The notes beneath the pieces are model-generated. The model had not been told where the DNA came from and did no database searches. It saw only the letters and a program-made list of their open reading frames with translations. A program made the translations under genes and the position numbers. Below, in pieces: positions 20,090 through 63,232 of a DNA stretch of 64,000 nucleotides (its first letter is position 1; each line of letters begins with the position of its first letter). Origin of the DNA: Macrostomum lignano (taxonomy: Eukaryota). The stretch covers positions 186,001 to 250,000 of the forward strand of contig NIVC01001371.1 in NCBI GenBank assembly GCA_002269645.1, given 5' to 3'.

Positions 20090-20285
20090 AATGGGACTAG
20101 AGGTTTGGGATCTGTGGATTTGGGACTAGAGATTTCGGATCTGTGGATTTGGACTAGAAGTTTTCTGATCTGTGGATTTGGGACTAGAGGTTTGGGATCT
20201 GTGGATTTGGGACTAGAGGTTTGGGATCTGTGGATTTGGGACTAGAGGTTTCGGATCCGTGGAAATGGGACTGGAGGTTTAGGAT
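20090..20285. repeat. Short 29-bp tandem array (GGGACTAGAGGTTTGGGATCTGTGGATTT)n
   Basis: About 6 units sharing GGGACT...GGGATC motifs with the neighbouring 46-bp satellite. Confidence 0.85.
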
Positions 20286-33420: not shown

Positions 33421-34042
33421 CTGTAAGCATGTGAAGTTTGTCTGCTTTTTCTGTTGTTTGTGCCGCTCACTCACTCATTCCCCCAGAGCCAGACCAAGGG
33501 TCAGGCGATAGAGCTGAATGTACATAGCGAATGTACAGTGTTTTGGAATAACTTTTTAATAGCCTTCCTTCCCTGCACCCCCGCGCGTGTAGACGAGAGG
33601 CTACCTGGCTACGTTTAGCCATGACAGTTTAGCCGCTTAGCGAGAGATTCAAACCACTGTCCTCTGTATAGACAAGTCTGCAGCAGTTTAACAGTGGATG
33701 GCAAATCAAGGCGATGCGGGGGTGTGGGATAAAAATAGCGAAAAATAAATGAATAACTGGTTATTGATTACAATACAATCCTACTAAATTAGTTACACCA
33801 TCAAAATTTTAACTAAGTTTCGCATAAGGTTCAAAACTTTAAAATTTAATGGCTCCTAAGAAATGCGTATTTCCTTGGTTGTGTTGGACTGCTGCAGAGT
33901 GCAGACTGTGGTGGTGGTGATGGAGCTGGAGATACACAAATTCCCCTCAGGACTGCTAATTGGCCAGAAAGGTGACGTGATTAAAGCATGAGAAATGATA
34001 ACAACCATGAGAGTACTACGTCCCAAAAACTGGCTTTCGAAC

Positions 34043-35495
34043 CAGGGATCGGTAGATTTTTGCCTCAAAGGCCAGATAAAGAATCCAGCTCATGGCTGCA
34101 GGCCAGATGAGAGTGGAAAAGAGAAGGAATAGACTGTTAGAAGAGAGGAGAGGCGAGAGGAGGATAAGAGAAAATATAGAAGATAACAGGAGAGACGAGG
34201 GGGCCAGGGGTGAGGAGAGAGCAGAGAATATGGGAGGAAGAAGCGAAAGGAGGGGAGAGAGGAGGGAGAGGAAAGAGTAGAGGCGAGAAGAGGGAGAGAG
34301 AAGAGGGGAGAGATGAGACAGATGATAGATGAGAGAGGAGAGTAGAGAAGAGTGAGAAGAGAGTAGAGATGAGAGAGCAGAGAGGCAGATGAGAGAGGAT
34401 CGAGAGGAGAGACTAGAAAGGATAGAGAAGAGAGGAGATAAGAGGGGGAGAGAGGGAGAGAGAGGAGAGAGTTGAGAAAGAAGAGATGATAGAGTAAAGG
34501 GAAGAGGGAAAGAGTGGAAAGAGATGAAATTGTAGAGATAAGAGATGAAGCAGGAGAGAGCAGAGTGCAAAGAGACGAGAGAAGAGAATAGAGGGGAGTG
34601 AGTATAGAAGAGGGAAGAGAAGAGAGGAGTAAGGAAAGAGAGGAGTCAGAAGAGAGGAAGAGAAGAGTACACAGGACAGAGGAGAGTAGAGATGACAGAA
34701 GATAGAGAGGGATGAGAGATCAAAGATGAAAGTGAACAGACGATATGAGGAGAGAGGAGAGTGGAGAGAGAAGAGAGAAGACAAGAGAGGGAGAGAGTAT
34801 AGAAGAGGGAAGAGAAAAGACGAGAAGAAAGGAGAAAGGAAAGAGGAATCAAAAAAGGGGAAGAGAAAAGTACAGAGGAGAAATGTGAGAGAACATCTGA
34901 GAGTAAAGATGACATATGAGAGAAGGGAGATGAGAGAGTAGAAACGAGAGTGAACAGACGAGAGATGGGAGAGTAGAGCGAAGAGGAGAGATAAGAAATA
35001 AGAGATGGGAGATGAGAGGTGAGACAAAGGGAGAGAGAAGTGAGTGAGGAGAGAGGAGGGGGGAATCGAGAGGACGGGGGAGATAGGGGAAAAGGAGGAG
35101 AGAGGAAAGGAAAGAGGGGAGAGACGAAAGGAGAGAGAAAGAGAGGAGAGAGAGTAGAGAGAGAGAGAGCAGAGAGAGACTGAGAGAGAGCAGAGAGAAA
35201 TGAGAAGAGATAGAGAAAAGACAAAAGAAGAGAAAGGAGAGATAAGAGAGCAAAGAGAAGAGAGAAGGGAGGAGAAAGTTGAGAGAAGAGAGAAGAGAGA
35301 AGAGAGGAAAAAGAGAGAGGAGAGATAAGGGAAGTGTTGAGGGTGTGGAGAGGGAAGAAACGAGAGAAGAGGGGAGAGAGGAGAGAAGAAAGAAGAGATA
35401 GGAAACAAAAGAGAAGATAGAAGCTTCAAAGGATCCAAAGGACATAGGGAAAGGCAGAGGTAGAGGGCAGAGGCCAGAGTTTGCCTGACATTCTG
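34043..35495. mobile_element. Degenerate hAT (Charlie-like) non-autonomous element with purine-rich interior
   Basis: Left end CAGGGATCGGTAGATTTTT...AAAGGCCAGATAAAGAAT and right end GGCCAGAGTTTGCCTGACATTCTG resemble Charlie-type CAGGGGT..GCAAAC termini. The left end is homologous to 56892-56960. No TSD is retained. Confidence 0.5.
34105..35470. repeat. Low-complexity polypurine (GA-rich) tract, ~1.35 kb
   Basis: Predominantly A/G on the + strand. It yields spurious L/S/F-rich ORFs on the - strand. Confidence 0.95.
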
Positions 35496-36701
35496 CGTAG
35501 CATCCCAGCCAACAATATCAATGCTTGCTTCAAATCCTAATTTTACACGAGTGTACTCTATTTTGTTTAACTCTATCCTAACTATTAACAAGTTTTTGTT
35601 TGAGTTTGACCTCAGATTTTAGAATACATGCAAAAATGGTTCTGGGGATTGGAGTTTCCTAGGTTCAAAATCTGCGGGTTTCAATAGCTTGTACAATAAA
35701 TATAAATACATTTTATCTGAGGTAAAAAATATAAGATTACAACTATTCATTTTGTGATAGGAGAAAGCATGTAACAATTTAAGATTATAAGCATACTTAT
35801 TTTGTTGGTATTTAAATTTTGCATATTTCAAAAAATTTGTTAGAAGATCAATATATTTGTGTCTTTTGAATATTTAGAAAAAATTAAAATTGGCATAGGC
35901 CCTACATTTAATTTTTGTCCTAGCAAATAAGCAAAATTAGGCCTAAATGTTATTGTTTAATTGTTTTAGTAAACCTCTAAATAAACTTGTCACTTAGGAT
36001 TATTAGAACAATTTTTTGCTTGCAACCAAAACAGTTGTCACTAAAGAGTCTATGAGTTTATCACCAAAATTTTTTTCTTTTTATGTCACTAAAATGACTA
36101 TATTATATAATCCATTCTTAAAGCTATATCTCTAAACTATAGCCACAATAAATAGGGTTTAGATAGATAGATAAAGCTATAAGATCAATCCAAAAAATGT
36201 CACCAAAAAGCATACATGTGCAACTGCTAACCAACCTGGCCAATCCAGCCACTGTAAATTGTGGTAGACCAGGGATAAGTCGTATAAATGCCTAGCCTAA
36301 AAGTACAGATGTAGTACTAAATACTAATTAGATGCTGAGGCATTATGTCTCCATAAGACAGTCATAGTTACTCCTGCCATTTACCCAAAATAGCATAAAT
36401 TTTTGCTTTAGGGTTTTTTTTACAGATAAGTTGCATTTTTGGTCAAAAAGTAAGTCATATGGGCATGGCCAGTATAAATCAGGGGGATTGCAATGTATGC
36501 CAAAAAGACTGACACTGTATGATTATGCTTATATTAGAGATAAGGTCTAGGGCCTGACATAGGTAGTATGCACTATCCTAAAAAAATCAAAAGCCTAGAA
36601 AAAAGTAGAATTAAATTCACCTCAAACAAAAATGCTGCATACACACAGGTTAATAGAGCAGGGGATGAATACAAACATTCAAGGACTCAAAAGTAAAAGA
36701 T

Positions 36702-36877: not shown

Positions 36878-38493
36878 AAAAAGATAGGAATTTTTAGGTG
36901 GCAGCAGGCAGATACGGTCCTATTTGATAAATTTATTTATTCTCAAGTTTCATTTATTTCCTATTTGGGTTCGGCTATACATACTACACACTACAGATAA
37001 CAGAATTGATTTGGGCTAGAGTTGTTAAGTGGGACGTCTTTACTAGACGTGCGTGCTAATTAAGGCTACTGCTACTAGGCTTCGTGTTTGTGTATTATAA
37101 AGCACATAGCTTTTGTGTCCGTAAAATCCATCTGAAACTGAAAATCGCTTGAATATTCCTTTGGTTTCATCATAAAGTGACTCACTGAAGTCACTCTGGC
37201 CAGCCTTTTCTACAAAAACAGTTATTTAAATTTTTCGCGTTACTGATTATAGCAAATTTTGAAAAGCTTAAAAAGTAAAATTGTAATTTTATGCAAAAAC
37301 AAGAAACTTTCATCTACAAAATATTTCTTTTCATAAGAATTTTAAGTTCACTGCTTTAAAGACCGTTTCTATGTAAGCAATCAAAAGTTTAATTGGCAAA
37401 TTTTACATTATTCATGGAGCTGCGCTTTCCAGTGAGCTAAAACTAATAGTGAGATCTCCACCTAATCCCACGGGAGTAAGCCTGTTATTTATAAATATTC
37501 AGGATATTTAGGAATAATTTTTGAAAATAATTCTGTCATTATTTGAGAATGTGGCATAGAAAACAAGCCCAAAGTTATTTAGATTTGTACGCATTTATTC
37601 AATACTACAGAACAGAATATTCTAAAGTGGCAGTGCGCCAATTATTATTTAGTTTTTATTTACCTGCTATGCAATAAATTTTGGCTTAATTTTTATACTT
37701 CTTAATAGAATAAGTTTTTGGAGTTATATAAACGCAGAATTGTTGAAAAGTTTTACTGTCTTTTTTAATTTATTTCTTTAATAACACAATTTTGCAGTTG
37801 GCAGCACATTTCTAATACATTAGAAAAACATGTCAATTTCGTGATACAGTTATACTGTTTATCATAACTTGAATGGTCTATTCCTTTTGGTGCAATTTTC
37901 AGGTTCTGAATTTCTAACTTGGGATTTTTTGCTTTTGTTTAATTTCTTATTAGTTAAAAAATTGTGTTCAAAAAAGCTACTGAAAATAGGACTCAAACTA
38001 AGACTCAATAAAAAGCTGCGTAAGACTTATTCCGTCAATTTTTATTGAAAGAATGTTGCTTTGGTCCTTTCGATCCATACATTCAAAAAGGGAAGGCAAT
38101 CTTGTTTCCATGCTTAGTTCCAATTAAAATGACACTTATCATTGGCCATTTTTAATGCCTAGTTTATGCAAGAGAATATACTTTTTCTGTAACAGGAATT
38201 CAATTGTCACTTCCCCTCATGTGAGCTGACTAGATTATTGTAATATTTTAGTGAATTTAGCAATTAGAAAATTTATTATAACGGCTATCTATAAAAGCAA
38301 TATTTATTCGTAAGGAGCTGCTGATACTGATCCATATTTTCCATGGCTTTATCTTACAATCAAGTCGATTCCAAGATGTGGCTGCTACCTCTTGGTTCAT
38401 TGCTTGGTTAATAACCAGCTATTTAATTTCATTTTATAGAAAATACTAACTGGGCAATTATGTTAATCTTATTTACTATTGATTATTCTTCAG

Positions 38494-40875
38494 ATGTCGG
38501 ACACTCAGAGCCGCAAGTCATCTCAGCCACAGACTCCAGTGCCAGATGGAGCCCAGGAGCCGACCACAAAGGAGCAGAACTTCCTCACCGATAAGACGTA
38601 CCTGCTCTCAACCACCAACTCAACTGGCATCAACCTCTACGAGCACCTGGTCACCTGCCTGCGTAAGATTCTCGAAGAACGTCCACGGGACGTTGTCGAC
38701 ATCTTCGAGGACATCAGCAAGGAGTGCAAGCGATCGCGTCTCGCCGGCGATGGCGACTCCCTACGCGGAAAGCTCGACCGCAGCACTGAGATCGCTCTGG
38801 CCGAAATTCAGAAGCGACTGTTTAACGTAAGCGCTTGGCTTGGCTGTACATTGTTACTTGTCAGTCAGGACTTGTTGGACTGTTTTAACTGACTAGAATA
38901 GTTCTAATTTATTCTAGAGGCCCGACGGCGACGATGACGAAGCGATGGGCGAGGACGACGCTGATCCGAGGCTGCCCAATCTTCTGCAGCTCGCCTTCTT
39001 CTTTGAGCAGGGCGGCGTAGGTGAGTAGAGATGCCTTTAATTACGTTATGTCAGGTCTTTACCAATAAATGAACACCGCAAATGGGAAGTCTTGTTGTTT
39101 TGTTGTGGGCAATAGATGACCTCCGCAACTCCTTGCGACAGCCAACCTGCACTCACTGAGGCAGCAATTAGGTACCGAACTCCCACAGTTGTTTGCACCT
39201 GCCCTGTAGTTCCTTCTTAACATCAGGCCTTATGAGCGTTAATCGCACAAGTAAGATTATACGAGTAGCAACCCAGGAATTTTACGAGACGTCAGCCACT
39301 TTTCGCCGATCTTAGACAGAGAGCAGGTGGTATAAAATCACTCCGAGATATTCCCTGATTCTATAATTCACGTCTATTTTCCATAAAATTCTCCTCCATT
39401 GCAGGCATCGACAAGGACGAGATCTACCGCATCTGGCTGTCGCTCAAGAAGCTGGTAGACGAGAAGCCGATCGAGAAGCTGCGCTTCTGGGGCAAAGTGC
39501 TGGGCACTGAGCAGAACTACTACGTTGCCGAGGTTGAATTCCGCGAAGGCGAAGGCGAAGAAGAGGCCGAAGAGGAGGCCGAGCCGGAGCGCGACGACAA
39601 GGACGACGAGGAGGGCGAAGAAGAGGAGACGGAGGATGACACTCCCAAGCCGAACTTTAAGCCGGCTCCGCCGGTACCAAAAGAGGAGCCCGGAACTGGC
39701 GCTAACAAGTACGCTTACTTCGTGTGCAACGAGCCCGGAAAGGCCTGGATCCGCCTGCCGAACGCCACACCAGCCCAGATTCACGTGGCCCGGCGAATCA
39801 AGAAGTTCTTCACTGGCCGGCTGGACGCGCCGATCGTGACTTACCCGCCGTTCCCCGGCACCGAGGCAAACTACCTGCGCGCCCAGATTGCGCGCATCTC
39901 GGCCGGGACGCACGTCTCGCCGAAGGATTTCTACACGTTCGGCGAAGAGGAAGAAGAGGAGGAGGACGGCGTCGGGCATGAGTCGTGCGCGGAGAATCCC
40001 GAGTACGAGCCGCCGCCTGTGCGCGCCCTGGCGGACCCTGAGGCCTGGGCCCATCACGTGCTGCACATCCTGCCGCAGGGCCGCACCCGGTGGTGGAACC
40101 CCGTCCAAATTGACGAGGACGAGGAGCTCGAGGACGAAGAAGAGGAAAAAGAGGAGCAGCCCCAGCCCCAGCCTGAGGTTGGGCCGCCGCTGCTGACGTC
40201 ACTGTCCGAGGACGCGCCAATTGACGGCATGCAGCCGTGGACTGTGCGCCTGTCCAGTGGCCTGGTGCAGCGCTTCGCTGTGGCCGTCGTGTCGTCCAAC
40301 CTGTGGCCAGGAGCGCACGCTGTGGCGAGTGGCAAGTAAGCAACGGCGGGCGTCGAGTTATTTATTGCACAAGGCAGAACATTCGTTTTGCATACACATA
40401 GATGCAAATGCCTTGACAGTCGCAGATTCAGAGCTGGTTCAAATTCAAAGAAAGTAAATTACTCACTCAGAGTTACTGGATGACATCATGTTTGCGACAA
40501 ACTGGTACATGTAGTGAGTCCTACTAGGACTCACATCAGACCGCTTCATTCTGTTCTTAGATAGACATGTACTTGCCACACACAGTACTTTTAGTAGTAG
40601 AAACAGATGCTTACACTAGCTACTGAACGCCTCCTCTGTACCGCAGAGTGTGCGAGAACATCTATATCGGCTGGGGCCACAAGTTCACCTCCGAGAACTA
40701 CAGCCCGGCCCCGCCGCCGCCAGTCATGGCGGAGTTCGTCAGCGACCCGGAGCTCAAAGAGACCGATGACCCGACGCCCGAGGAGGAGGCCGCCCTCAAA
40801 GCGCTGCTGGCCCAGGCCGAGGAGGGCGAGGAGGAGGGCTACGGCGACGAGGAGGGCGGCGAGGACGACGATTGA
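38494..40875 (+). CDS. RSPH4/6: Radial spoke head protein 4/6 homologue, ~531 aa, 4 coding exons
   Basis: Exons 38494-38826, 38918-39020, 39405-40335 and 40647-40875 are phase-compatible. Motifs: NLYEHL...[80 protein letters not shown] and [10 protein letters not shown]. Confidence 0.96.
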
Positions 40876-41544
40876 GAAGAAAATAAATTTAGATTTTGAT
40901 AGCCGTGTAATTTATGAGTGACAATTCTGGCCTGCTTCGCAGAAGTTGTTTCTGACAAGCAGCGAAATTAACCTACATTTTATAGCTGCTATTGACTACT
41001 CTGTGACTTCAACATTCCAGCAGCAAGAGAACAATTATGATTTCTAAAGCCTTATCGAGTTACTAACGTATTGCAAACCTCTTGCTCTCGTGTGTTTCAA
41101 ATTTTTTCTTTTGGAACAGAAAAATAAACTAAATCGCGCAAAAGTTTCTATGTTGCTAAAGTTTTCCTGACGGTTATTATAACTAATACGCTGCTTTGAT
41201 AACATAGTTCATTTATGCTCTAAAGTGGTTTTATAAACACACTAAGTCAGTCAACAGATACTGCATGTGATGGAGGCACAGAATAACGAACAGGAATTCG
41301 ATGCCTGCATAATGGAAAGTGCGGAGATCGAAAACATTAAAAATTTTATTTCAGTTATAAAAAAATCATCGTTTACTTTTTCTGGAATTTCATCAATAAA
41401 AAGTCTGCTTCTAGGTTATAGCTAGCTAGTATGATAATAATGATAATAAATATGGCTACAGCGAGTCAAAGGAGTTGGTCACAGTAGTCAAAAAACACAA
41501 TTTCCGAATAGCTCGCGTTCTATCGATCTGAAACAGTCCGACAG

Positions 41545-44089
41545 TTACATAGCAGCATTGCCGTTGATCAACGTCATTTGAATAATGATGACCGAAGCCA
41601 AAGCTACCACAACTGGCAAATAAGCCGCGACAGTTGATCCAGCTGACGTCACTTTTGTTGGTGGCACAACTCTACCACCGCCACCGCCACTGCCACCGCC
41701 AGTGCCACCGCCACCGCCACTGCCACCGCCAGTGCCACCGCCACCGCCACTGCCACCGCCACTGCCACCGCCACTGCCACCGCCACTGCCACCGCCACTG
41801 CCACCGCCACTGCCACCGCCACCGCCACTGCCACCGCCAGCGACCAGCTTAGCGATGACCAGGGCCTGAAAGCCGGTCCCTTCAGATTGGAAGAACGCGA
41901 GATTTGATGCCATAATCGACTGCGCAGTGGACACTGCGCTGCCGCTATTGAGGCGTACAAGCACCTTCACGGCGAAGAACGACACCTGGTAGGTGTTCAT
42001 CACGCTACCAATGTCGTCCCAGCGGTTGTTCCGCAGCGCATCAACGAGGCTGAGCGAGAGGACGCCTCTGGTGTAGGTGGCGTATGCGCTGTCGAGGTCC
42101 GCCTGCTCCTTTCGATAGACGAACACGTTGCGGCACAGCACGATGACCGTCTCGCCGGACGCCCGGTGACTCCTGTGACAAACGAAGCTGTCCGCGCTCA
42201 CGATTCGCATTTCCTGGCCAAACGCATCTGTGATGTCGATGGACTTGCTGTCCTTCGGCACGATGATCACCGCAGTACGAACGTAGATGTACTTTTGATT
42301 AAGGACGGAGTTCAACAGGCCAGCAGCATCCGAAGGCCGCTGGTTAACCGAGGTTCCAATCGATTTTTCAATGTCAGCTCTGTAGAAGTTGTACCAGCTC
42401 TTCATTACCAGGTCGTTGCCGACATCCGCCATTCGGTTAACCACCTGGATTGGTTAGAGTAGGGTATGCAAGTTAATCATGTGTCTCCTTTGGAGAAGAC
42501 GCCAACTACACTGGGTACTAGGGCAGACTAGACCAACAGTTTGATACATGTACTGGCGCGAAAGTACCCTGACCTGGTGAATTCCGTGTGCAGGCGCATT
42601 AATTAATAACTAATCATCATTAGTTAGTTGGTAAGTTTGTACAGTCAGAAAGAAAACCAAATTGTCATCTCACCAGCATCGACTTTTCCCTCCATGCCTG
42701 CCTGTCCGTTGTCAAATTCTCCTTAGTCAGACCGAAGAGGCGAATTTTGGCGGCCGTGTCCAAAATGATCGCCTGCTGGAAAGTGTGGTGCAGCTCCACC
42801 ATCATCTTCAGGTACAAGATCAGGTCGCCGCGAGCGCAGTAGGTGAGCAACCTTGCAAACACGGTTTTGTCAGTGAGCATCTGCTGCAGCTCTAGTAGAA
42901 CTCGCGAGCTCTGGAGCTGAGCTGAAAAAGATGTCGATTGACATCAGCTGCATTTCTTGTGACACTATTTTTGTCAGTAAAAGATTGCGACACAAATGCG
43001 ATTAAACTCACGCAGCTCAGTGTCAAAAATCTTCAATGCTTCCCCTCGATCAGTCTTAGCTCGCTCCAGCATCTCCTTGTACCTGCTAAAGAAACCTCTG
43101 ACAAGAGTCTGACGCGACATCAACTCTCTAGAGACCTGGCCGCACTGCACAACACTCTCTAAGTCTTTGATGGCGTGGAAATTCGCTTCAATCATAGCGT
43201 TCAACTGAAATTGATAATTGAAACAGGGTGTCGCTCTGAATAAAGTTCGTTGTAAAAAATATCAACGCAAACTCAGCTTTGAATAGTTTTACTCTACTTA
43301 TAGTAGACAGACAAGCAATCTGTGCGCCCCGTCAGGCTTAAGGAAAATAATGCTTCAAACAGAAAACCACCCACCCTGAAAGCCAGCTAGCTATCTAGCC
43401 ACAGATATAAGCACTCCCTATAAGCTTTGGCTCAAAGCAGCTGAGCAACCCCCGTAAGCTTTGAAATCTCAGTAATCCCCCCGTGAGCTTTGGCGGACAT
43501 CTCAGCAATACCCCCGTGATCCAAATTGTCTTAGTTGTATTGAAATTGCATTAAGTGCATCACGTATAAAGCGCATAAGCCCATTTAAAGTTACGCTCGT
43601 ACAAAACAGTGTAAGAGCCTTGTTGGCTGATGCACGCTCGGTACGTATTAAGTGAAATGAAACTTAAAAACCAAAGAACTAATAAACTAATGTATAGTGG
43701 TGACTTACCTCAATAAATCGCTTCTCCAGGTAAGAGTACAGTTCAGCGAATTGGTCAGCCTCGTTGAAAAGAACCTTTCCTAAAACGTCAGTCACTACGG
43801 AACTGATGGTAAACACATATGACAGAAGCTTCAGCTTGCCAGGCATTCGAGCGAACGCATCTGCCAGTATCGAGCTCACAGATGACGTCACCTCAAGTAG
43901 AAGCTTTGGAATTTCTCTTTCCATTGCGCTGCTGACATTGGCTTGAAAAGTCTGACGATCGTTGTTCCGCCAGGAGGTTGAAATCCCTGTCTCCAGATCC
44001 GACAGCCGATCCAGACTGTCCTGGGAGCTGCTCGGCAACTGGGCCAACACCAGCAAGATCAGAACGGGCACCGCTTTGAAAAGAAGCAT
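41545..44089 (-). CDS. Uncharacterised secreted/GPI-like protein, paralogue A (~573 aa), rapunzel/cephalotoxin-like helical domain, Gly-Ser linker
   Basis: Exons 44089-43709, 43204-43012, 42921-42674 and 42444-41545. Signal peptide MLLFKAVPVLILLVLAQLP, hydrophobic C-tail. Exon 2/3 sizes (193/248 nt) are identical in all three paralogues. The family call is inference from recalled motifs. Confidence 0.85.
41683..41840. repeat. Coding 6/12-bp repeat (CCACTGCCACCG)n encoding the (GGGS/GGGT)n linker of paralogue A
   Basis: Visible and in frame in exon 4. Absent from paralogues B and C. Confidence 0.92.
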
Positions 44090-44762
44090 TTTCGTATCCT
44101 TAATATAAAAGGCTTAACTTAAAACTGAATGGCAGTCTGTAATGCAGTCGAACTGAGAACCACAGAATCTAGAACTATTGGCGCTGTTGTCATGCCGCGT
44201 AAACAGATCACTGCCAGCTCTATTTATATTAGCTTGTCGTATGCGCTCATGCATCTTAGAGTACATCTCAGTTGGTCAATGACAATAGAAGTGGAACTTC
44301 ACTCTATATTTTAGCACCTGGCTACCTGTCGCATTGCACATCAAGTACAGCAAATCGCTAGTCTTTCTCCACGAACACAAGCTGTTTACTCGTAACCAAA
44401 GCGGTTGTATTAAAAAAGAGAACTTCGCTTTTGCTGTTTACATTACAGTTTGTTTAAATGAAGGAAAAAATAAAATACGAGGGAACGAGCTGTTTTAGAA
44501 AGCATCGTCCAACTCTTACGAGCTAGCTTAATTATATAGCTACCAGTATATTTCTGAATTGTTAATTACGGCGTTTATTAGAAAGCTTTTTAACCTTTTT
44601 ATTATAATGAGATTATTTGAATTCAAAAAGAAAAGAAGCAGCGAAAAAACAAAGGGCGAATATTTCTTTATTTCTCAAGGGTTAGCTACCTACGAGCGTA
44701 GATTAGATCAAAAAGAATATTGTAGGCTACTTTGGAGTCGCGAACTATGCAAGTTAATGAAT

Positions 44763-46633
44763 TCAGTAGAATTTCATAATCAGGATGCTAGCCAGGGTTA
44801 AAGCTGGAGCCACAGGCCACAGACCGGCGATGGCTGCACCATTGGCCTTCACTTTGGCTGGCGGCACAACTTTGTTGACAGCCGACGGTGAGCCGCGCAC
44901 CAGCTTGGCGGTGACCAGGGCCTGAAAGGCGGTCCCCTCGGACTGGAAGAACGCCAGATCCGACGCTGCACTCGACTGCGCAGTTGCCACTTCGCCGCTG
45001 TTCAGGTACACAACAACTCTCACGGCGAAGAACGACACCTGGTAGGTTTTCATCACGCTACCAATGTCGTCCCAGCGGTCGTTCCGCAGCGCATCAACGA
45101 GGCTGAGCGAGAGGACGCCTCTGGTGTAGGTGGCGTATGCGCTGTCGAGGTCCGCCTGCTCGTCCGGGTAGACGAACACGTTGCGGCACAGCACAATGAC
45201 CGTCTCGCCGAACGCTCGGTGTCTCCTGTAGCAAACGAAGCTGTCCGCGCTCACGGTTTGCATGTCCTGGCCGAACGCATCCGTGACGTCGATGGACTGG
45301 CTGTCGTGCGGCACTACGATCACAGCAGTACGAACGTAAAAGTACTTGGTGACCAAGGCGGAGTTCAGGTCGTTGGCTGCCTGCTGTCCGGAAAAGGAAA
45401 CCGTCTTGCTCAGCGACTTGTCCACGTCTTTCACGTAGAAACTGTGCCAGGTGTTCCTGACCAGCTCGTTTCCGACTTCCATCATCAGATTTACCACCTG
45501 AAGCAGAATGTTTCATCTAGCTAAATGATAATTAAGGTGATTATTTTTGGATTAGCAATGAGAACATCAACTTTTCATAACATGTCCAGAATATCTTACT
45601 AGAGACGACTGATTCCTCCAGTATTCCCGGTCAGACGACAGGACCTCTTTGGTCAGATTGAACAGACGAAGCTTGGCTGCCGTGTCCAGAAAGATTGCCT
45701 GATTGAATGTGTGGTGCAACTCAAACATCATCTTCAGGTACTTAGAGTAGTCTCCCTGAGCGCAGTAGGTGAGCAGTTTGGAATACAGAGTCTTCTCAGT
45801 GAGCATCTGCCGCAGCTCCAACAGGATTCTCGAGCTCTGGTACTGGGCTATAGAATGAAAAATACAACAATGCCTCAACAGGTGTAAGAAAGGTAGATGT
45901 CGCAATATTTGATACTCACGCAGCTCAGTGTCAAAGATAGCTAGTGCCTGGCCTCGGTCAGTCTTGGCTCGCCTAAGCATCTCAGTGTATCGGGCAAAGA
46001 AGGCGCGGACTACGTTTTGGCGAGACTTCAGCTCGCTGGACTCCTGGCCGCAGAGTACGATGCTCTGCAGTTCCTTTATGGCGTGGAAGTTCGACTCAAT
46101 CATGGCGTTTACCTGTGAGTTGAAGATTGAGAAAGTTTCTATATGCTTGGTTTAATCTCGGTTAACCTTGGCAACCCCCTTAGCTGCATGTAAACTGTGC
46201 ATTGCAAGGAGCCACCATCATAATACTGAAAGCAATGCAATACCTTGCTAAATTCCTCTTGGAGGTAGTCGTAGAGCTCAGCGAACTGATCCTCTTCAGG
46301 AAACAAAATCTGGCCAAGGATGTCGGCTGCAACAGAAAGAATGGTGAACACGGCGGACAGGATCAATAAAGGCGGAAACAAGGACAGTACGGAGGCGGTG
46401 GCCGCAAAAACACTGGCGGTGATGCCAAGCACCAACTGCGGTATTTATTTAGTCATGGCGGCGTCAACGTCAGTCTGGAAGGTGACCCGATCGTTGTCTC
46501 GCCAGGAGACGGAGATGCTGGTCTCCAGGGCTGTCAGGCGGGCCAGAGGGCTCGGGGTTGGTGTAACCAGCTGACTCGAGGTGGCGGGCAGCCGAGAGAC
46601 AAGTAGGAACAGGATGAAAGCCGCTATAGACAT
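44763..46633 (-). pseudogene. Paralogue B of the same family with an in-frame TAA in exon 1 (pseudogene, null allele or base error)
   Basis: Exons 46633-46244, 46112-45920, 45847-45600 and 45497-44763 have intact splice sites. MTK-TAA(46447-46445)-IPQL aligns with REIPKL (A) and AEIPDA (C), i.e. GAA>TAA. Confidence 0.75.
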
Positions 46634-47508
46634 GGTGGGACATGCGATTCTACTATAGAAATTTATCAGTGGTTCTGCGTTGACTGTAAACACCTTCACT
46701 TCGCATATTTATAATCTTCTGCAAAGATGAGCGCCCTAAGCTAGTCAAGCTCATATTGAACAATAAGCTCGGTCGAATCTGTGACGCTCTGATGTGCACA
46801 AAAAAGTGGAACTTCCACTCCTAAGGGTCTGGACCTGCGTACCGTAGACTTTAGAGGACAGTGCGAGTAAAAAAAAATTTTTGTAGGTACTCAGACGAAA
46901 CAAATGGAAGAATCGGGTGGAGGGCCGTTGGTAACACAAAAAGACACGATTCTTTGCTGAAACTCAATCCTCCACGCGGTGGAAAGAAGCGAGCGCCAAC
47001 AGCGCTGTAATGTACAATAAAAGGGCATGCTAATGAGGCAATAGGTTCTATTACTGCATCGAAATTTATGAAGTAGCTTCTTCTAATGGTCACTCATCAA
47101 CTTTATGGGCATGTTTTTTTCGCACAACACGTCGCTTTCTAAGAGTTACCAAGGGGTGACCAAATCCTTATGCTTCGAGATCTTTGTAAACCTTGCAAAG
47201 ACAAAAACAAAAAAAAACTGCGTAAACGTTTTTAAACGAGTACATTCAGTATTTAGGCCGTAGTCATTACTAAAAAGACCAAAATGGCCACCCCGTAAAT
47301 TTAAAGCCTCTAAAAATACGAGCCTATGTAGCGTAAAAATAACAACATAAAATAAAATTTAAGAAAGTCTGTTCAGAAAGTTTCCGCTGAAAAAAATACA
47401 TGCACACGAATAAAGCCCCAACCCTAAAATGAATCAGTAGGAGAAATACAACTGTAATCTTCACGCATACTGCTCAATAACTACTCGAATTTGTTCATAC
47501 TCTGAACA

Positions 47509-49590
47509 TCAGCACACATTCTTCATCGCGATGCTGGTCAAGATCGCAGCCGCAATCGCAGACCACTGACACGAGAGGGCAGCACCTCCTGAAGAGGGGG
47601 ACACCTTGGCTGGCGGCACAACTTTGTTGACAGAAGAAGGCGAGCCTCCGACCAGCTTGGCGGTGACCAGGGCCTGAAAGGCGGTCCCCTCGGACTGGAA
47701 GAACGCCAGATCCGACGCTGCACTCGACTGCGCAGTTGCCACTTCGCCGCTGTTCAGGTACACAACAACTCTCACGGCGAAGAACGACACCTGGTAGGTG
47801 TTCATCACGCTACCAATGTCGTCCCAGCGGTCGTTCCGCAGCGCATCAACGAGGCTGAGCGAGAGGACGCCTCTGGTGTAGGTGGCATATGCGCTGTCGA
47901 GGTCCGCCTGCTCGTCCGGGTAGACGAACACGTTGCGGCACAGCACAATGACCGTCTCGCCGAACGCTCGGTGTCTCCTGTAGCAAACGAAGCTGTCCGC
48001 GCTCACGGTTTGCATGTCCTGGCCGAACGCATCCGTGACGTCGATGGACTGGCTGTCGTACGGCACTACGATCACAGCAGTACGAACGTAAAAGTACTTG
48101 GTGACCAAGGCGGAGTTCAGGTCGTTGGCTGCCTGCTGTCCGGAAAAGGAAACCGTCTTGCTCAGCGACTTGTCCACGTCTTTCACGTAGAAACTGTGCC
48201 AGCTACTAATGGCCAAGTCTAATCCAACTTCCGTCATTAGGTCGACAACCTGGAATACATGTAGATACTCGTTCAGTGATACATCAAGTATTGCGCGAAC
48301 ATGCATTGGTACACTTCGCTCCTAAGTCACGGAATCAATAGAAATATAGAAATAGAAATAGAACTTAAGCAATCTTACCAATGCCGACTGATTTCTCCAG
48401 AAGCCCCTGTCGGACTCCAGAACATCCTTGGTCAAATTGAACAGGCGAATTTTGGCTGCTGCGTCCAACATGATCGCCTGTTTGAATGTGTGATGTAGCT
48501 CCACCATCATAGTCAGGTACTGCATCAGGTCGCCGCGAGCGCAGTAGGTGAGCAGCTGGGCGTACACAGACTTGTCAATGAGCAACTGTCGCAGCTCCAG
48601 CAGGACAAGCGAGCTCTGGTACTGAGCTGAAAAACCGAGTGACTAAAGATACTCGTACGATATAATGGCGCAGTTGATTTCACACTTAAGAAAAACTCAC
48701 GCAGTTCAGTGTCAAAGATGGCCATAGCCTCGCCTCGGTCAGTCTTGGCTCGTTCCAGCATCTGCTTATACCTGTTGTAAAAGGAATTGACGAGAGTCTG
48801 TCGCGACCTTAAATTCTTTGATACCTGGCCGCACAGCACAATACTCTCCAACTCTTTGATTGCGTGGAAGTTTGCTTCAATCTTGGCGTTTACCTGAAAG
48901 TCAGGGACAAATTATATAAAAATTCAAAGGCAGAATGAAATCTACGAGCTAATAAAACTTTATCTATGTGGGCCAAACAGTAAGGGAGTGTAGACCAATC
49001 GATGACTGTTGCTACCGACAGATGCTAATGATGAAAGGGAAATTCCTTATTTTGCCTCCCCAGCGGGGGGCTTTGATGTCTAGTCGAATATACTACTAAA
49101 TTATGTTCTAAAAATCGGGTCTATATCATACAAATTGTACCTTAATAAACTGATCCTGCAAGTAGGTGTATATATCTTCGAATTGGTCATTCTCGGCGAA
49201 TACAGTCATGCTAAGAACGTCGGCCACCACAGAGAGAATGGCGAAGGCTGGGGTGAGAATTTTCATAGCCGATATTCGCTTCAGCCTCGATATTTTCCTC
49301 GGATCGGTAGGTACGTTAGGGTCGGTGGCTTTCTTCGGATCTTTTTCAAAGATCTCTACCAAGGCCTCCGTGGCGCTGGAGGTGATGCTAACGATGGCGT
49401 CGGGTATCTCCGCCAACAGAGCAGTGTTAACGCCCGACTCAAACATGACTCGATCATTGTCCCGCCAGGCAATCGAAATATTCGTCTCCAGGCCATGGAG
49501 TTCGGCTAATGAATTTGGAGTCAGCTTGCACCGCACTGCTGCGGGCAGCTGGACTAGCAGCAGAGTAAAAACAGCCAGAATAGCCACCAT
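47509..49590 (-). CDS. Paralogue C of the same secreted/GPI-like family (~543 aa)
   Basis: Exons 49590-49141, 48893-48701, 48626-48379 and 48249-47509. Signal peptide MVAILAVFTLLLVQLPAAVRC, C-tail SSGGAALSCQWSAIAAAILTSIAM. Confidence 0.87.
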
Positions 49591-49911
49591 GCTGTTGGAA
49601 ACACAGATTTACTACAGAAGTCTCAGCTGCAACGGCCTGAGCAGCCTCATATTGTTGTGCTAAAAACAGTTTATTATGCTTTCCGCTCTAAGTTGCTCTC
49701 AAACTGTAGAGGTAAAAAACCGAACATTGCTAGCTCACGCTGTACGCGAACAGGCCAGCGATACAATTAAGCCTGTTTTACCTGTACAAAATAAACTTTA
49801 CCTGTCCCGTACAGTTTTAACAAGGTGGAACTTCCACAATCTTGGCAAGACATTCGTTTTAGTCATACTACGTGTACTCATACTACACGCAGGTCGCAGA
49901 GGGCTTGTAGC

Positions 49912-50210
49912 GGGAAGGCTGTAGCCTAGTGGTTAGAGCGTCGGACTCACGACTGATAGGTCGGGGGTTCGATTCCCGACCCACTCGGAACAATTTGTGT
50001 CCTTGAGCAAGACACTTAACTCTGCATTGCTTCAGTTCACCCAGCTGTAAAATGGGTGCCAGCATTAGCTGGGGTAATTGAGGGTGTGTGGCGACCCCCC
50101 AGTCCTTGGACTGAACAGCCGTACGCAGCCTTCAGATGCGCCGCGCATTAGCTGCGGCTGAGCTGTCGGTTGCACATCTGCCTATCAGAGCAAGGCCCAA
50201 GTGTGATTAT
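49912..50210 (+). mobile_element. tRNA-derived CORE-SINE
   Basis: A-box TAGCCTAGTGG and B-box GGTTCGATTCC, followed by GTGTCCTTGAGCAAGACACTTAAC...CTGTAAAATGGG, which matches the MIR/CORE domain pattern. There is a near-identical copy at 63.6 kb. Confidence 0.88.
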
Positions 50211-54500: not shown

Positions 54501-57500
54501 GTCGGACCCGGCGAACACATCCTCAATCCGGGTAGCAACCGGTAGTCCCAGCGTGTGCACTCTGATCCTCCGCTCGCCCTTCCGCCCAGTGTACAGCAGA
54601 GCGGCCTGGAACACCACCGGCTCGCTGGCGCCCGCGGTCCCGGCGCCATCGCCGACAGCCAGCTGGATGGCGAATCCGGCGTCCGGACTGGCGCAGGGCA
54701 GCGCCGCCAAGTCGGTGGCGCGAACGAAACAGGAGCCGTAGAAGGCGGCCACGCTGTAGCCGTTTGAGCAGCGGACCCGGAGCACAGCCTGGAGAAATGG
54801 GGCGATTCTGGGGTGGTTCAGGGCGATTCCTGGGCTGGTTCAGGACGATTCCTGGGCTGGTTCAGGGCGATTCCTAGGCTGGTTCAGGACGATTCCTGGG
54901 GTGGTTCAGGGCGATTCCTGGGCTGGTTCAGGACGATTCCTAGGGTGGTTCAGGGCGATTCCTAGGGTGGTTCAGGGCGATTCCTAGGGTGGTTCAGGGC
55001 GATTCCTAGGGTGGTTCAGGGCGATTCCTAGGGTGGTTCAGGGCGATTCCTAGGGTGGTTCAGGACGATTCCTAGGGTGGTTCAGGGGCGATTCATAGGA
55101 TGGTTCAAGGGCGATTTTAGGGTGATTCAGGGCGATTCTTGGCCTCCAAAGCAATTCCTCAAAGCTATAGCAGAGACCTCTAATCCCAGCTTGCGAGTGA
55201 GATGCCGGCCAAGATCCGAGGCCAGCCGGTCCGCATCGTCGGGCAGGTGCGGATAGCGGTGCACCCGGCCGGAGGAGTACACGGCTATGGGCATGACCGA
55301 GGCCAGGTCAGTGTGACCGGGCCCGACGCAGAACAGATCAACAGACAGCTGGGCGCTGCAACAGTCTAACGCCAGGCGCTTGTAATAGTCAGTGGCTGGC
55401 TGGCCAGCCAAGTCGTCCGAGTCTGATCCGGCCGGACCGGACAAGGCGCCGGGTCCGACTGACGGACGGGAGGCCAGAAACAACAGTAGACGGCCGCCGC
55501 TGGACTGGGCGAGTCTGAATACGAGTAAATTGACCGATGTGTACTACTGGCAGTAGGCGGCGACGAAAAGTAAAAAACTGACAGAGATTGACCTATCAAC
55601 AAGAGACACAAGCCAGTCTACAGGAGACACAATGACCAAGCAGCCAGAGACACAGGCCAATCTACAAGAGACACAAGCCAGTCTACAAGAGACGCAATGA
55701 CCAAGCAGCCAGAGACACAGAGAGACACACAAGAGAGACACAATGACCAAGCAGCCAGAGACACACAGGCCAATCTACAAGAGACACAAGCCAGTCTACA
55801 GGAGACACAATGACCAAGCAGCCAGAGACACAGGCCAAGCTACAAGAGACACAAGCCAGTCTACAAGAGACGCAATGACCAAGCAGCCAGACACACAGGC
55901 CAATCTACAAGAGACACAAGCCAATCTACAAGAGACGCAATGACCAAGCAGCCAGAGACACAGGCCAAGCTACAAGAGACACAAGCCAGTCTACAAGAGA
56001 CGCAATGACCAAGCAGCCAGACACACAGGCCAATCTACAAGAGACGCAATGACCAAGCAGCCAGAGACACAGAGAGACACACAAGAGAGACACAATGACC
56101 AAGCAGCCAGAGACACAGGCCAAGCTACAAGAGACACAATGATCAGCAACCAGACCAGAGACACAAGCCAATCTACAAGAGAAACAATGACCAAGCAGCC
56201 AGAGACACAAGCCAAGCTACAAGAGACACAATGATCAAGCAACCAAAGACACAAGCCAATCTACAAGAGACACAATGACCAAGCAGCTAGAGACACACAG
56301 GCCAATCTTTAAGACAGACCTGTGAGCTATGGCCAACGCCGATCCCAGACAGCAGCCGGGCACCGCAGGGAACTCCAATTCGGGCAGCGATTCCAACAAT
56401 TCAACGATGGCGTCGCGACATTCGGCCACGGTTACTAGAAGACCTTCGGGCATTGGTAGGTCCGAATCGCCGTCCAGATCAGGCATGGCCAGCAGGCTGG
56501 GACGGGGTCCGTCCAGTTTGTACAGGTGCAGAACGCCGTTGAAGGTGATGACGGCCAGCTGGGTGCGGGTGTCGCCTGGCAGACGGTCCAGACAGCGAAG
56601 CAGAGTCTGACTAACCGCAGTCAGGTAGGCAGTAGCCGACTTGGCAACGGCCGGGTCTGGCGACAGAACCTGGGACACGTCCAGCGCCAGGATGTAGGTT
56701 GCGGGCGGCGGCGGCCGAACAGAATACTCCTGGGTGGCGATGAATTCCACTGTGCCGTTGCGAATCTCTGGCCGACGGCTCGGGTCGCCGTAGGTCTGCG
56801 AGGGCAATAGGTTTCCAGCGGAGCAGTTGTCTTAAAACTACTCGGGACCAAAATATGAGTTCGTACTGGTCTAGGTGATTCTCTAGAGTGGCTGGGGGTC
56901 TGCAAACTTTTTTACCTCAAGGGCCAGATAAAGAATTCAGCTCATGGCTGCGGGCTGAGAAGAGGCACAAACATTGAGCGTGCCGGATTGCTATTGTGAA
57001 GTTTCAAAGGACCCGAGGGACAGATAAAGGGATAAAGGCTAGTTTTCTATCCATTCTAAATGTATAATGTGGCATCCCGCCGATCTCTGATTGGTGTAGA
57101 ACGAGTGACAGAACTTGATATAGGTACAATAGAACATTTATATATAAATACCGTATATGCATAAAAGCGTTGATCTTAAAGCATTTAAGCGCGTATTATT
57201 TTTTACAAAGGTTTCTGCGAAAGTAAAAGTCTGCCTTACCTGGGATATGGGATCATAAAGAAACTCTTCTGGCAAATCGTTGTCAAGAAAGCAGAGACTG
57301 CAGCGCCACCTCTGTTGGCTGGAGAAGCGCACGAAAGGATTAATATAGGCCCGGCAATCTCGGCAGCGAACGATGACGTTGGCCTGAATGATTGCCAGGC
57401 TGCGCAGATCCTTAAACGGGTGCATTGCCAGGCCTAACGGTAGGCGAGATCGGCGCAACAACTCGGCAGTGGCCGGCACGGCGTTCATTGTGCAGGACAT

Positions 57501-62572: not shown

Positions 62573-63232
62573 ATGGAATCTATATATGTAATGTTTGTTT
62601 TCCATGGATATAATTCTGAGATGTCCTTGTAACTGTAGTTGGCATAATATCCCACTGCAGCTTGTTGCCATATGCTATACAAACACAAATTTCAGGACTC
62701 AGACGAGCACTCTGGCTCCGGGTTTGGGGCAACGCCAGGCGCGACAGCCAACCCTGGAGGAGGCGGTCTGGACGATGGCCGACCAATTGGCCGGTGCTCG
62801 CCAATCCGGGACCAGGACCGCTTCCTGCCCATTGCCAACATATCGAAGATTATGAAGCGAACAATACCGGAGACTGGCAAAATCACTAAAGAGGCGAAAG
62901 AGTGCGTGCAAGAGTGTGTGTCCGAGTTTATCTCCTTTGTCACGTCCGAAGCGTCCGACAGATGCCAGGAGGAGAAGCGGAAGACAATGAACGGCGAGGA
63001 CATCCTGACGGCGATGCAGGCTGTCGGCCTAGACAGTTACATTGAGCCGCTGAAAGTCTACCTGATGAAGTATCGGGAGGCCAATAAATTGGAGGCGGCC
63101 AACGAACGGGCCGCCAATCCGCAGGGCGGCGGCGGCACCGGAGCAGCGGGCGGAGCCAGCGGCGGTGGCGGTGACGACGGCGCTGTGGGTGGAGGCGGAG
63201 CCGGCGGCACCGTGTTTGTCTCTTTCAACTGA
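62573..63232 (+). CDS. NFYB: Nuclear transcription factor Y subunit beta (histone fold)
   Basis: The main exon 62696-63232 contains [17 protein letters not shown]...[41 protein letters not shown] probable 15-nt first coding exon 62573-62587 (MESIY|GTAATG) is phase-compatible, but the start is tentative. Confidence 0.95.

Follow-up and report, generated by a model that had tools for sequence, protein, structure and literature searches.

Rapunzel (RPZ) and SE-cephalotoxin-like proteins have been described as one loosely defined superfamily with BLAST cross-hits (PMC6315956). SE-cephalotoxin (SE-CTX) is a paralytic toxin of the venom gland, and the AlphaFold models of DECA-CTX presented in a preprint contain helices and a small beta element. 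In the SE-CTX of cuttlefish and squid, a hydrophobic helix rich in Ser and Gly lies about 100 residues into the protein and leads to D.F..VN.K(L/I)(D/E); a helical stretch of about 200 residues separates this motif from L(S)..KYP(W/Y), where a small beta region opens, and there is a C-x14-C pair with (K/R)A...V(L/I).(I/L)C(K/R). The Acropora millepora cephalotoxin-like skeletal matrix protein B7W114 corresponds to the N-terminal module of SE-CTX only (BLASTP E 8e-43; PMC3748352). Seven RPZ homologues with signal peptides and/or transmembrane (TM) domains were reported from Schmidtea mediterranea (PMC13563047). Goblet cells are the site of planarian RPZ expression, with TBK1 as a regulator, and the planarian members of the superfamily are secretory goblet-cell proteins linked to innate immunity (PMC13563047; PMC7117911).

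Here, three tandem genes from a 64-kb window of the Macrostomum lignano genome (the whole stretch of DNA analysed, 64,000 nucleotides) were compared with these systems. We put at about even the chance that they represent a highly diverged branch, confined to this genus, of the SE-cephalotoxin/cephalotoxin-like/Rapunzel (CTXL) superfamily, made up of GPI-anchored surface proteins.

Gene models and transcripts

The genes were modelled afresh on the sequence. Three paralogues of four exons each lie in the interval 41545-49590 (minus strand), whose ends coincide exactly with the g1 stop codon and the g3 ATG:

41545..44089, minus strand: g1, 573 aa, open reading frame intact; exons 43709-44089, 43012-43204, 42674-42921 and 41545-42444
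44763..46633, minus strand: g2, 521 codons; exons 46244-46633, 45920-46112, 45600-45847 and 44763-45497
47509..49590, minus strand: g3, 543 aa, open reading frame intact; exons 49141-49590, 48701-48893, 48379-48626 and 47509-48249

All introns of the splice models were GT-AG (9/9), splice positions and intron phases were identical across the three genes, and exons 2 and 3 measured 193 nt and 248 nt in each, which confirms the claim of the first-pass annotation that the paralogues share one exon architecture. The alignment of g1 with the transcript-derived homologue P0001 had no gaps at the exon junctions. A homologue of these genes is transcribed, being present in two runs as intronless contigs of 1.9-2.4 kb (L001, L002) spliced as in the window gene models. 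No further family copies were found in the window by tblastn, and the genes adjoining the array were housekeeping genes unrelated to the family.

Divergence within the array

Identity to g3 in the alignment was 72% for g2, 62% for g1 and 57% for P0001. dN/dS among family sequences was 0.16-0.34, so the coding sequences are under purifying selection. The tandem trio annotated earlier is real, but the following features within it had been overlooked:

46445-46447 (plus coordinates), minus strand: premature TAA at codon 63 in g2 exon 1 (direct sequence reading and alignment)
41843..42314, minus strand: g1 exon-4 core gene-conversion tract, 87% identical to the matching part of g2 and g3 (blastn)
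44850-45500 and 47602-48252, minus strand: g2/g3 exon-4 tract, 95.5% identical (blastn)
41675..41839, minus strand: 12-nt tandem repeat in g1 exon 4 (TRF: period 12, 13.8 copies, 92% matches)

The TAA lies in 'AMTK*IPQ' (alignment column 'AMTKXIPQ'), where g1 and g3 have the Glu of a conserved E-I-P motif, and g2 is a probable recent pseudogene or nonsense allele. With one of three copies broken and housekeeping genes as neighbours, the earlier ranking of this array as the best candidate for a new system was overstated. In the exon-4 core, dS was 0.018 for the g2/g3 pair and 0.31 for g1 against either of them, whereas exons 1-3 were near saturation (dS = 0.7 to >3), a contrast that points to gene conversion. 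The repeat in g1 encodes a flexible linker of about 50 residues, (GGGS/GGGGGS/GGGGGT)n, between the globular part and the stalk and tail.

The following elements were located upstream of the genes:

49825..49837, no strand assigned: palindrome GTGGAACTTCCAC, 235 nt upstream of the g3 ATG
46806-46818, no strand assigned: the same 13-mer palindrome GTGGAACTTCCAC, 173 nt upstream of g2
44291-44302, no strand assigned: variant GTGGAACTTCAC of the palindrome, 202 nt upstream of g1 (sequence reading)
44222..44229, minus strand: TATAAATA box, 133-140 nt upstream of the g1 ATG (sequence reading)
46706-46713, minus strand: identical TATAAATA box, 73-80 nt upstream of the g2 ATG

The two exact matches of the palindrome, against 0.05 expected per window, make it a candidate shared cis-regulatory element, and the TATAAATA box may have a promoter function. 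The remaining upstream regions of g1, g2 and g3 did not align with each other.

Protein features and structure models

The signal peptides, motifs, four Cys and GPI-type tail listed in the first-pass annotation were recovered in all three genes by hydropathy and alignment, and all of those motifs and the four invariant Cys were also present in P0001. The features were placed as follows:

49528..49590, minus strand: predicted signal peptide of g3, MVAILAVFTLLLVQLPAAVRC (N-terminal hydropathy peak, then small residues at -3/-1; heuristic)
44024-44089 (g1) and 46574-46633 (g2), minus strand: predicted signal peptide equivalents (hydropathy heuristic)
49198..49278, minus strand: internal hydrophobic helix, g3 aa 105-131, ...MKILTPAFAILSVVADVLSMTVF... 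(hydropathy, conservation, helical in both AF2 models)
48061..48099, minus strand: KYFYVRTAVIVVP motif, g3 aa 348-360, best local match to the SE-CTX motif KYPWYSWSIVTV
47938..47985, minus strand: Cys386...Cys401 of g3 (SFVC-x14-C-RN), invariant in 4/4 aligned sequences
47512..47595, minus strand: C-terminal GPI-like signal, g3 aa 516-543, SSGGAALSCQWSAIAAAILTSIAMKNVC (small-residue triplet, short spacer, hydrophobic run)
41548-41652 (g1) and 44766-44850 (g2), minus strand: GPI-like signal equivalents (hydropathy)

The signal peptide is predicted to be cleaved. Hydropathy gave one internal hydrophobic segment per protein; in g3 it is followed by DQF..(I/L)Y.YL...F..(V/L)NA.IE.NFHAIK, which spans the exon 1/2 junction. 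The KYFYVRTAVIVVP motif of g3 forms the first beta-hairpin of the C-terminal domain (AF2 strands E309-316 and E320-327 in P0001), and Cys386 and Cys401 are a probable disulfide. A conserved stalk motif, (K/R)VV(P/A)P(A/T)(K/R)V, stands before the GPI-like signal. Both AF2 models, which are of low confidence (pLDDT 37.8 and 46.1), were all-alpha in the N-terminal half and combined beta and alpha structure in the C-terminal half.

Database and profile comparisons

A phmmer search with P0001 against 1.84 billion representatives returned only the query itself and an M. lignano protein, and a profile search of 5.8 billion proteins returned Macrostomum matches only. The family is thus known so far in Macrostomum only and is lineage-restricted. 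Together with the hydrophobic signals at both termini, this bears out the earlier description of a lineage-specific, secreted and probably surface-tethered family. A precomputed weak match to Pfam PF27742 'CTXL_M' was present on the transcript homologues P0001 and P0003, the local Pfam copy searched with the window proteins having no such model; according to the tool, about 7 in 10 precomputed weak matches of this kind pass Pfam's own threshold. From the name alone we take 'CTXL' to stand for 'cephalotoxin-like', and these Pfam domains were presumably named after B7W114.

In a relaxed alignment, the window proteins were collinear with SE-CTX over 325 columns, with the hydrophobic helix, D.F..VN.K, KYP(Y/W) and C-x14-C aligned. 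The best local hhalign match to SE-CTX fell exactly on the predicted KY motif and was not significant (local score 23.4, P 0.04, probability 1.3%); 5/60 column shuffles reached 23.4 and the reversed control scored 25.0. HMMER scores against SE-CTX were 0-5 bits only, not significant, with reversed sequences scoring about equal; in empirical shuffles (g3 1/250, CTX1_XNOT2 0/100) the real scores lay above most shuffles. The resemblance to SE-cephalotoxin noted earlier stands as collinear motifs and a weak PF27742 match on homologues, but not as significant homology by hhalign or HMMER.

Two UniProt entries, A0A1I8HNU5 and A0A1I8H0J9, are partial models of g3 or of near-identical copies and bear the source name 'NIT domain-containing protein'. 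NIT is a bacterial sensor domain. That the proteins are nitrate/nitrite-sensing, as these names would have it, is extremely improbable: the region concerned is all-helical in the model, but a local Pfam search at E <= 10 gave no match to NIT or any other family for g1, g3, P0001 and P0002, and the name probably arose when a profile automatically matched a sequence rich in helices.

Discussion

Like the SE-cephalotoxin (B2DCR8)/DECA-CTX module (about aa 58-445), the window proteins appear to be secreted with a signal peptide, and they share its Ser/Gly-rich hydrophobic helix and following motif, its helical stretch before the KYP region and its C-x14-C pair with similar internal residues. Unlike SE-CTX, which is about 1050 aa long and runs on into EGF and other Cys-rich modules, the flatworm proteins lack these modules, finish in a stalk and GPI-like tail, and have the two helical-domain Cys at other positions. 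B7W114, compared by description only, is likewise a short, secreted, stand-alone module, but it is clearly similar to SE-CTX, which the flatworm proteins are not, and no GPI-like tail was reported for it. Rapunzel proteins (zebrafish rpz1-5 and the seven of S. mediterranea), also compared by description only, similarly form a multigene family; phmmer with P0001 (E <= 0.001, library including UniRef) gave no Rapunzel match, so any similarity lies well below ordinary detection, and the roles put forward for RPZ (fin growth, IRF7/TBK1 regulation) have nothing to do with pore formation. CTXL membership of the window proteins is suggested by the layout shared with SE-CTX. The family could instead be a true orphan, Macrostomum-born GPI-anchored surface glycoproteins with a motif likeness due to chance among helix-rich secreted proteins, and then with a lineage-specific surface role such as adhesion, surface coat or recognition. 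We regard this as doubtful, though it agrees with the Macrostomum-only returns, with hhalign and HMMER scores against SE-CTX inside the shuffled and reversed control range, and with local Pfam, PDB and Foldseek searches that all lacked a significant match. Against it stand eight motifs collinear with SE-CTX, including identical C-x14-C spacing, the same order of signal peptide, hydrophobic helix, helical region and beta region, the PF27742 matches on two homologue sequences with their usual pass rate, and the Rapunzel homologues known in flatworms (PMC13563047).

Considerably less probable is an identity as alpha-pore-forming toxins (ClyA/Hbl/Cry-domain-I/CfTX type) tethered to the membrane, with the hydrophobic helix inserting and microbial or prey membranes being lysed. 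Secretion, long helices and a concealed hydrophobic element are common to the flatworm proteins and to AhlB, MakA, YaxA, Cry domain I and CfTX, and the N-terminal domain has one hydrophobic helix of buried type. The Foldseek list included ClyA-family AhlB 6h2f, MakA 7p3r, AhlC 6r1j and YaxA 6ek7 (E 0.8-2.6, TM about 0.1, not significant), and a profile match to delta-latroinsectotoxin had E 0.84, not significant. Dynein stalks, SMC coiled coils and designed bundles made up most of the same list, which appears to be generic long-helix noise from the pLDDT 46 model, for which nothing was significant (best E 0.12, TM <= 0.16). The AlphaFold and Foldseek check proposed earlier for a pore-forming-toxin fold thus gave poor models and no significant match, and with PDB sequence and profile searches also lacking a significant match, the suggested link to Cry domain I, CfTX and alpha-pore-forming toxins is not upheld. 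No sequence, profile or structure search matched any pore-forming toxin significantly, the flatworm proteins add a predicted disulfide-containing beta/alpha domain and membrane anchor, the mechanism of SE-CTX itself is not established, and a GPI anchor would keep the protein on the producer's own membrane; the toxin and pore-forming reading is unsupported. As to the anchor, the C-tail has a hydrophobic run of 12-19 residues ending 3-6 residues before the C-terminus, with the small-residue triplets SAG, NGA, SGG and STG upstream, and a GPI anchor most likely takes the place of this signal. It seems unlikely that the protein is instead of type I, with a plain TM anchor, a cytoplasmic tail of 3-6 residues and no GPI signal: the 19-residue run in the g1 tail (YLPVVVALASVIIIQMTLI) could cross a bilayer and the tail is helical in the AF2 model, but with ~14 residues in g3, ~16 (two of them Pro) in g2 and ~12 in P0001 the other runs fall short of a TM helix, each of the four sequences has the triplet 8-12 residues upstream, and beyond a single Lys there is no basic stop-transfer cluster. 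The tail is also the fastest-evolving part (dN/dS = 0.5-0.9), as expected of a cleaved-off signal. The earlier remark that a membrane-anchored version of this fold would be unusual is weakened by planarians, whose seven Rapunzel homologues are reported to have signal peptides and/or TM domains (PMC13563047).

In our preferred model of a GPI-anchored offshoot of the CTXL superfamily, each gene would encode an extracellular glycoprotein of about 500 residues with a cleavable signal peptide. Its N-terminal half (~300 residues) would be all-alpha, with long helices and one strongly hydrophobic helix, and its C-terminal half (~170 residues) mixed beta/alpha with the C-x14-C pair, followed by the short conserved stalk and the hydrophobic signal replaced by the anchor. 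The hydrophobic helix may stay hidden within the helical bundle until contact with a partner or membrane, and the proteins might conceivably form pores. Secretory or epithelial cells would display the proteins at their apical surface or shed them from it, and the role of the proteins outside the cell may lie in epithelial defence or immune regulation.

Gene models and evolution of the array

Gene models were built on the minus strand of 41000-50200 from ORFs and three-frame translations, with exon boundaries set by conserved GT-AG sites. This gave three head-to-tail paralogues (g1, g2 and g3) with four exons apiece:

43709-44089, 43012-43204, 42674-42921, 41545-42444; minus; g1, exons 1-4, 573 aa
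46244-46633, 45920-46112, 45600-45847, 44763-45497; minus; g2, exons 1-4, 521 codons
49141-49590, 48701-48893, 48379-48626, 47509-48249; minus; g3, exons 1-4, 543 aa

The three genes agree in the length of exon 2 (193 nt) and of exon 3 (248 nt) and in intron phase, so that the common exon layout reported in the first-pass annotation holds; the interval it gave, 41545-49590, is bounded by the stop codon of g1 and the start codon of g3. In a full-length protein alignment g2 and g1 were 72% and 62% identical to g3, respectively, and the four cysteines and all motifs previously quoted were invariant in, or common to, the three proteins. Values of dN/dS among the copies and a transcript homologue were 0.16-0.34, and the family is therefore taken to consist of real coding genes under purifying selection. 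Further copies were searched for in the 64-kb window using tblastn and none was found. The initial observation is thus confirmed and extended; the g2 stop codon, the gene conversion in exon 4 and the g1 repeat had all been overlooked.

Codon 63 of g2 is an in-frame TAA (46445-46447 in plus-strand coordinates of this minus-strand gene), read as 'AMTK*IPQ', at a position where g1 and g3 carry a conserved Glu-Ile-Pro. Since the change is a single substitution (GAA->TAA) and the next methionine lies past the signal peptide, in exon 2, the most likely options for g2 are a pseudogene of recent origin, a nonsense allele, or an error of assembly in a genome known for its many near-identical copies. 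Rescue by stop-codon reassignment was rejected under the standard genetic code, which we take to be the one used by M. lignano, and rescue by a downstream start was rejected owing to the position of that methionine.

Synonymous sites in exons 1-3 are close to saturation (dS 0.7 to >3), whereas dS in the core of exon 4 was 0.018 for the g2/g3 pair and 0.31 when g1 was compared with g2 or g3. DNA identity in the exon-4 core (blastn) was 95.5% for the g2/g3 tract and 87% for the g1 tract, against 70-75% elsewhere. The low dS of this core, which codes for the C-terminal domain, relative to the nearly saturated upstream exons shows mosaic gene conversion. The tracts, delimited by DNA identity and dS, and the repeat found in g1 are as follows:

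44850-45500; minus; g2 conversion tract, paired with g3 47602-48252
41843-42314; minus; g1 conversion tract
41675-41839; minus; 12-nt tandem repeat (microsatellite) within the g1 coding sequence

The repeat, which g2, g3 and the transcript homologue lack, encodes a Gly/Ser(Thr) linker of the (GGGS)n type that connects the globular part with the tail and is about 50 residues long.

Predicted protein features

By hydropathy, g1, g2, g3 and the transcript-derived homologue P0003 begin with a hydrophobic stretch of 15-20 residues, small residues occupy -3/-1, and the signal peptides proposed earlier are upheld by this heuristic. A single strongly hydrophobic internal segment was detected (g3 aa 105-131). 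At the other end, a hydrophobic run of 12-19 residues stops 3-6 residues from the C-terminus; it is preceded by a triplet, SAG, NGA, SGG or STG, with a conserved stalk motif, (K/R)VV(P/A)P(A/T)(K/R)V, also upstream. As a rule of thumb, a GPI signal was taken to comprise small residues at omega and omega+2, then a polar spacer (~6-10 residues) and a hydrophobic tail that extends to the C-terminus, and the small-residue site and hydrophobic C-tail noted at first conform to this pattern. A plain transmembrane anchor would also use a hydrophobic C-terminus, but the runs of g3 and the homologue are shorter than a transmembrane helix requires, and the tail is the fastest-evolving part of the protein (dN/dS 0.5-0.9), as expected of a cleaved signal. 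By these rules of thumb a GPI anchor is probably the better reading. The proteins carry 1-3 N-glycosylation sequons, with the NLT site of exon 3 conserved.

Homologues and public annotation

Among 5.8 billion proteins searched, g3 retrieved a single relative, P0001 (55% identity), whose source is an intronless 2.4-kb Logan contig and therefore a transcript. A full-length form with signal peptide, P0003, was recovered from a second run, and its contiguous sequence spans all three modelled splice junctions without gaps. In the contig of P0001 (L001, 85-1675) the gene caller had begun at an internal Met; as the contig also holds an upstream ATG and the signal peptide of P0003, both runs express one full-length 529-aa protein. 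With P0001 as query, an exhaustive phmmer search of 1.84 billion representatives returned nothing but P0001 itself and P0002 (UniRef A0A1I8HNU5, M. lignano), in sequence nearly identical to g3 over its N-terminal half. When the four mature proteins were combined into a profile and the 5.8 billion proteins searched with it, only Macrostomum entries came back. No relatives were found in a metagenome scan with family patterns, and the contig collection gave no exact match to one window ORF or to the UniProt proteins of M. lignano.

The UniProt entries A0A1I8HNU5 and A0A1I8H0J9 (P0002 and P0004), which are g3 or near-identical copies, are truncated N-terminal halves of 264-266 aa, one of them with a mis-spliced junction ('ASLTLNCYQSS'). 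Both are named 'NIT domain-containing protein', after the nitrate/nitrite sensing domain. Pfam scans of g1, g3, P0001 and P0002 at E <= 10 matched no family, NIT included; the NIT identity was rejected on this result, and the public name, probably an error, ought not to be carried forward.

Comparison with cephalotoxin and Rapunzel proteins

In precomputed annotation, P0001 and P0003 have a weak match to Pfam PF27742 'CTXL_M' (best E ~1e-5 to 1e-3). The Pfam library used for the g1 and g3 scans was without PF27742, and genuine fragments of SE-cephalotoxin (SE-CTX) likewise match nothing there. From its name, CTXL_M may be read as 'cephalotoxin-like, middle domain'. An Acropora protein named cephalotoxin-like matches the N-terminus of SE-cephalotoxin (PMC3748352).

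For direct comparison, 12 diverse N-terminal SE-CTX modules were taken from the squid/cuttlefish homologue alignment in the supplement of a 2026 preprint. The family and SE-CTX are collinear on visual inspection and in a relaxed hhalign alignment, a qualitative comparison with no statistical test attached, in the order signal peptide, hydrophobic helix with F..VN motif, helical region, KYP(W/Y) strand and Cys pair. The hydrophobic helix reads FLSLLSVV in SE-CTX and FAILSVVA in the flatworm proteins; both groups then have D(M/Q)F..VN.K(L/I)(D/E) followed by ~200 helical residues, (I/L)NS.L..KY(P)(W/Y) at the start of the beta region, and a C-x14-C pair with matching (K/R)A, V, (L/I) and C(K/R). 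The best local hhalign match is precisely the KY motif (LNS.L..KY.YVRTAVI.VP) named in the first-pass annotation.

The profile-profile and HMM comparisons with the 12 modules did not reach significance. The hhalign score was 23.4 (P 0.042, probability 1.3%) against a column-shuffle null of 16.6 +/- 3.2; the real score was reached in 5 of 60 shuffles, the reversed control scored 25.0, and global mode gave no alignment. HMMER in both directions gave 0-5 bits, with empirical p from 1/250 to 42/250 and similar scores for reversed sequences. A protein search with a query stitched from cuttlefish CTX1 peptides and X spacers found nothing. As shuffled and reversed controls match the hhalign and HMMER scores, homology is not demonstrated. 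The resemblance is one of pattern, and as such it is real: of the SE-cephalotoxin layout proposed from sequence, the collinear motifs and the KY motif as top match stand, while statistical significance was not obtained.

SE-CTX is the sole sequenced paralytic toxin of cephalopods, and its mechanism is unknown. SE-cephalotoxin-like and Rapunzel (RPZ) proteins cross-match in BLAST (PMC6315956). The planarian Schmidtea mediterranea possesses seven Rapunzel homologues, which bear signal peptides and/or TM domains, are expressed in intestinal goblet cells, are down-regulated through TBK1 after injection, occur outside the producing cells after challenge and are co-pulled down with transfected DNA (PMC13563047; PMC7117911). 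Given these planarian proteins, a secreted or membrane-attached flatworm member would not be unusual, contrary to what had been supposed of a membrane-anchored version.

Structure prediction

AlphaFold2 models of P0001 reached pLDDT 37.8 for the single sequence and pLDDT 46.1 (pTM 0.35) with a 13-row alignment, and only their secondary-structure picture is usable. In this low-confidence model residues 1-305 form long helices and the tail is helical, while residues 309-450 form hairpins (the first being the KY motif), three helices and more strands. In the 2026 preprint, AlphaFold models of DECA-CTX are described as having a small beta element to which several helices connect; the P0001 picture is compatible with these, a compatibility that does not amount to a test.

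Foldseek of the model with pLDDT 46.1 against the PDB yielded no significant match (best E 0.12, TM <= 0.16), a fold test of little power given the low-confidence query; AhlB, MakA, AhlC and YaxA appeared only among the non-significant matches, interspersed with dynein stalks, SMC coiled coils and designed bundles. Searches of all PDB sequences with phmmer and profile hmmsearch found nothing below E 0.08, the sole toxin match being latroinsectotoxin at a non-significant E of 0.84. Long N-terminal helices, in line with the helical domain suggested at first, were seen in a low-confidence model with no significant fold match, and the link to Cry domain I, CfTX and the alpha-pore-forming toxins found no significant match in the PDB sequence and profile searches. 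On these Foldseek and PDB results the pore-forming-toxin reading is unsupported beyond the generic description of a secreted helical protein with a hydrophobic helix.

Upstream elements and genomic neighbourhood

A 13-nt palindrome with GGAA/TTCC half-sites, GTGGAACTTCCAC, lies upstream of g2 and g3, and a variant lies upstream of g1:

46806-46818; GTGGAACTTCCAC, 173 nt upstream of the g2 ATG
49825-49837; GTGGAACTTCCAC, 235 nt upstream of the g3 ATG
44291-44302; GTGGAACTTCCAC variant with one C deleted, 202 nt upstream of g1
44222-44229 (g1) and 46706-46713 (g2); TATAAATA boxes, 60-95 nt downstream of the palindrome

The two exact copies compare with 0.05 expected per window, and the rest of the g1-g3 upstream flanks is unalignable. 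Their placement suggests that the palindrome and the TATAAATA boxes form a candidate shared control element. Just upstream of g3, a tRNA-like stretch (gtagcctagtggttagagcg...ggttcgattcccgacc) was observed at 49905-49995; ARAGORN called no tRNA there, and the stretch is thus probably a tRNA-derived SINE fragment.

The neighbouring genes are as follows:

8248-8781; minus; C2-domain exon
19094-19927; minus; class I methyltransferase (COQ3-like in our reading)
28247-29518; minus; RAI1/DXO-like nuclease
38479-40339; plus; radial spoke head protein
56235-59072; minus; Sec24-like (zinc finger and trunk)
62672-63232; plus; NF-YB histone-fold factor

The neighbours are ordinary, all but the C2-domain exon being counted as housekeeping genes, none is functionally linked to g1-g3, and the 'new system' once suggested for the window reduces to the paralogue array alone. 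Large, strongly strand-skewed satellite or minisatellite blocks were also seen (3776-8057, 9522-15648, 17235-17951, 20000-26000 and 34016-35591), with extreme GC or AT skew and long artefactual ORFs of HSL-, CITP-, LLAPDFS- and LLDMLSSR-type repeats.

Interpretation

We give roughly even chances to the combined reading that these are genus-restricted, secreted and probably GPI-anchored glycoproteins, extremely divergent relatives of the CTXL/Rapunzel proteins, with an extracellular role. The proteins would then act outside the cell, in epithelial or secretory-cell defence or in immune regulation. The main rival, a true orphan family, is consistent with scores that controls equal, and has the weak CTXL_M match of the homologues and the collinear motifs against it; we regard it as the less probable of the two, though a serious contender. 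Pore formation as the mechanism, to which the hydrophobic helix lends itself, is possible but unsupported by the PDB searches, and we think it improbable.

A more specific scenario would extend the divergent-relative reading: Macrostomum would have made the cephalotoxin/Rapunzel module GPI-anchored, and a shielded hydrophobic helix would enter foreign membranes on contact or after shedding, giving a tethered, contact-dependent effector of membrane attack or sensing in epithelial immunity, its copies co-regulated via GTGGAACTTCCAC and partly homogenised by gene conversion. Taken as a whole, this scenario is a long shot.

Members of the SE-cephalotoxin/Rapunzel superfamily are widespread in animals: cuttlefish have one as a venom component, fish use them to regulate fin growth and interferon, and in planarians they mark goblet cells and serve as immune markers. 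Transgenesis is available in M. lignano, which is also amenable to RNAi. If the Macrostomum proteins are members, they would be short, stand-alone, surface-anchored versions in a genetically tractable flatworm, and a simple handle on the role of the module; if not, they would be an instance of a surface-protein family that evolves fast and is confined to one genus. In both cases the locus is a young tandem array in which gene conversion has been mosaic and a nonsense mutation has recently arisen.
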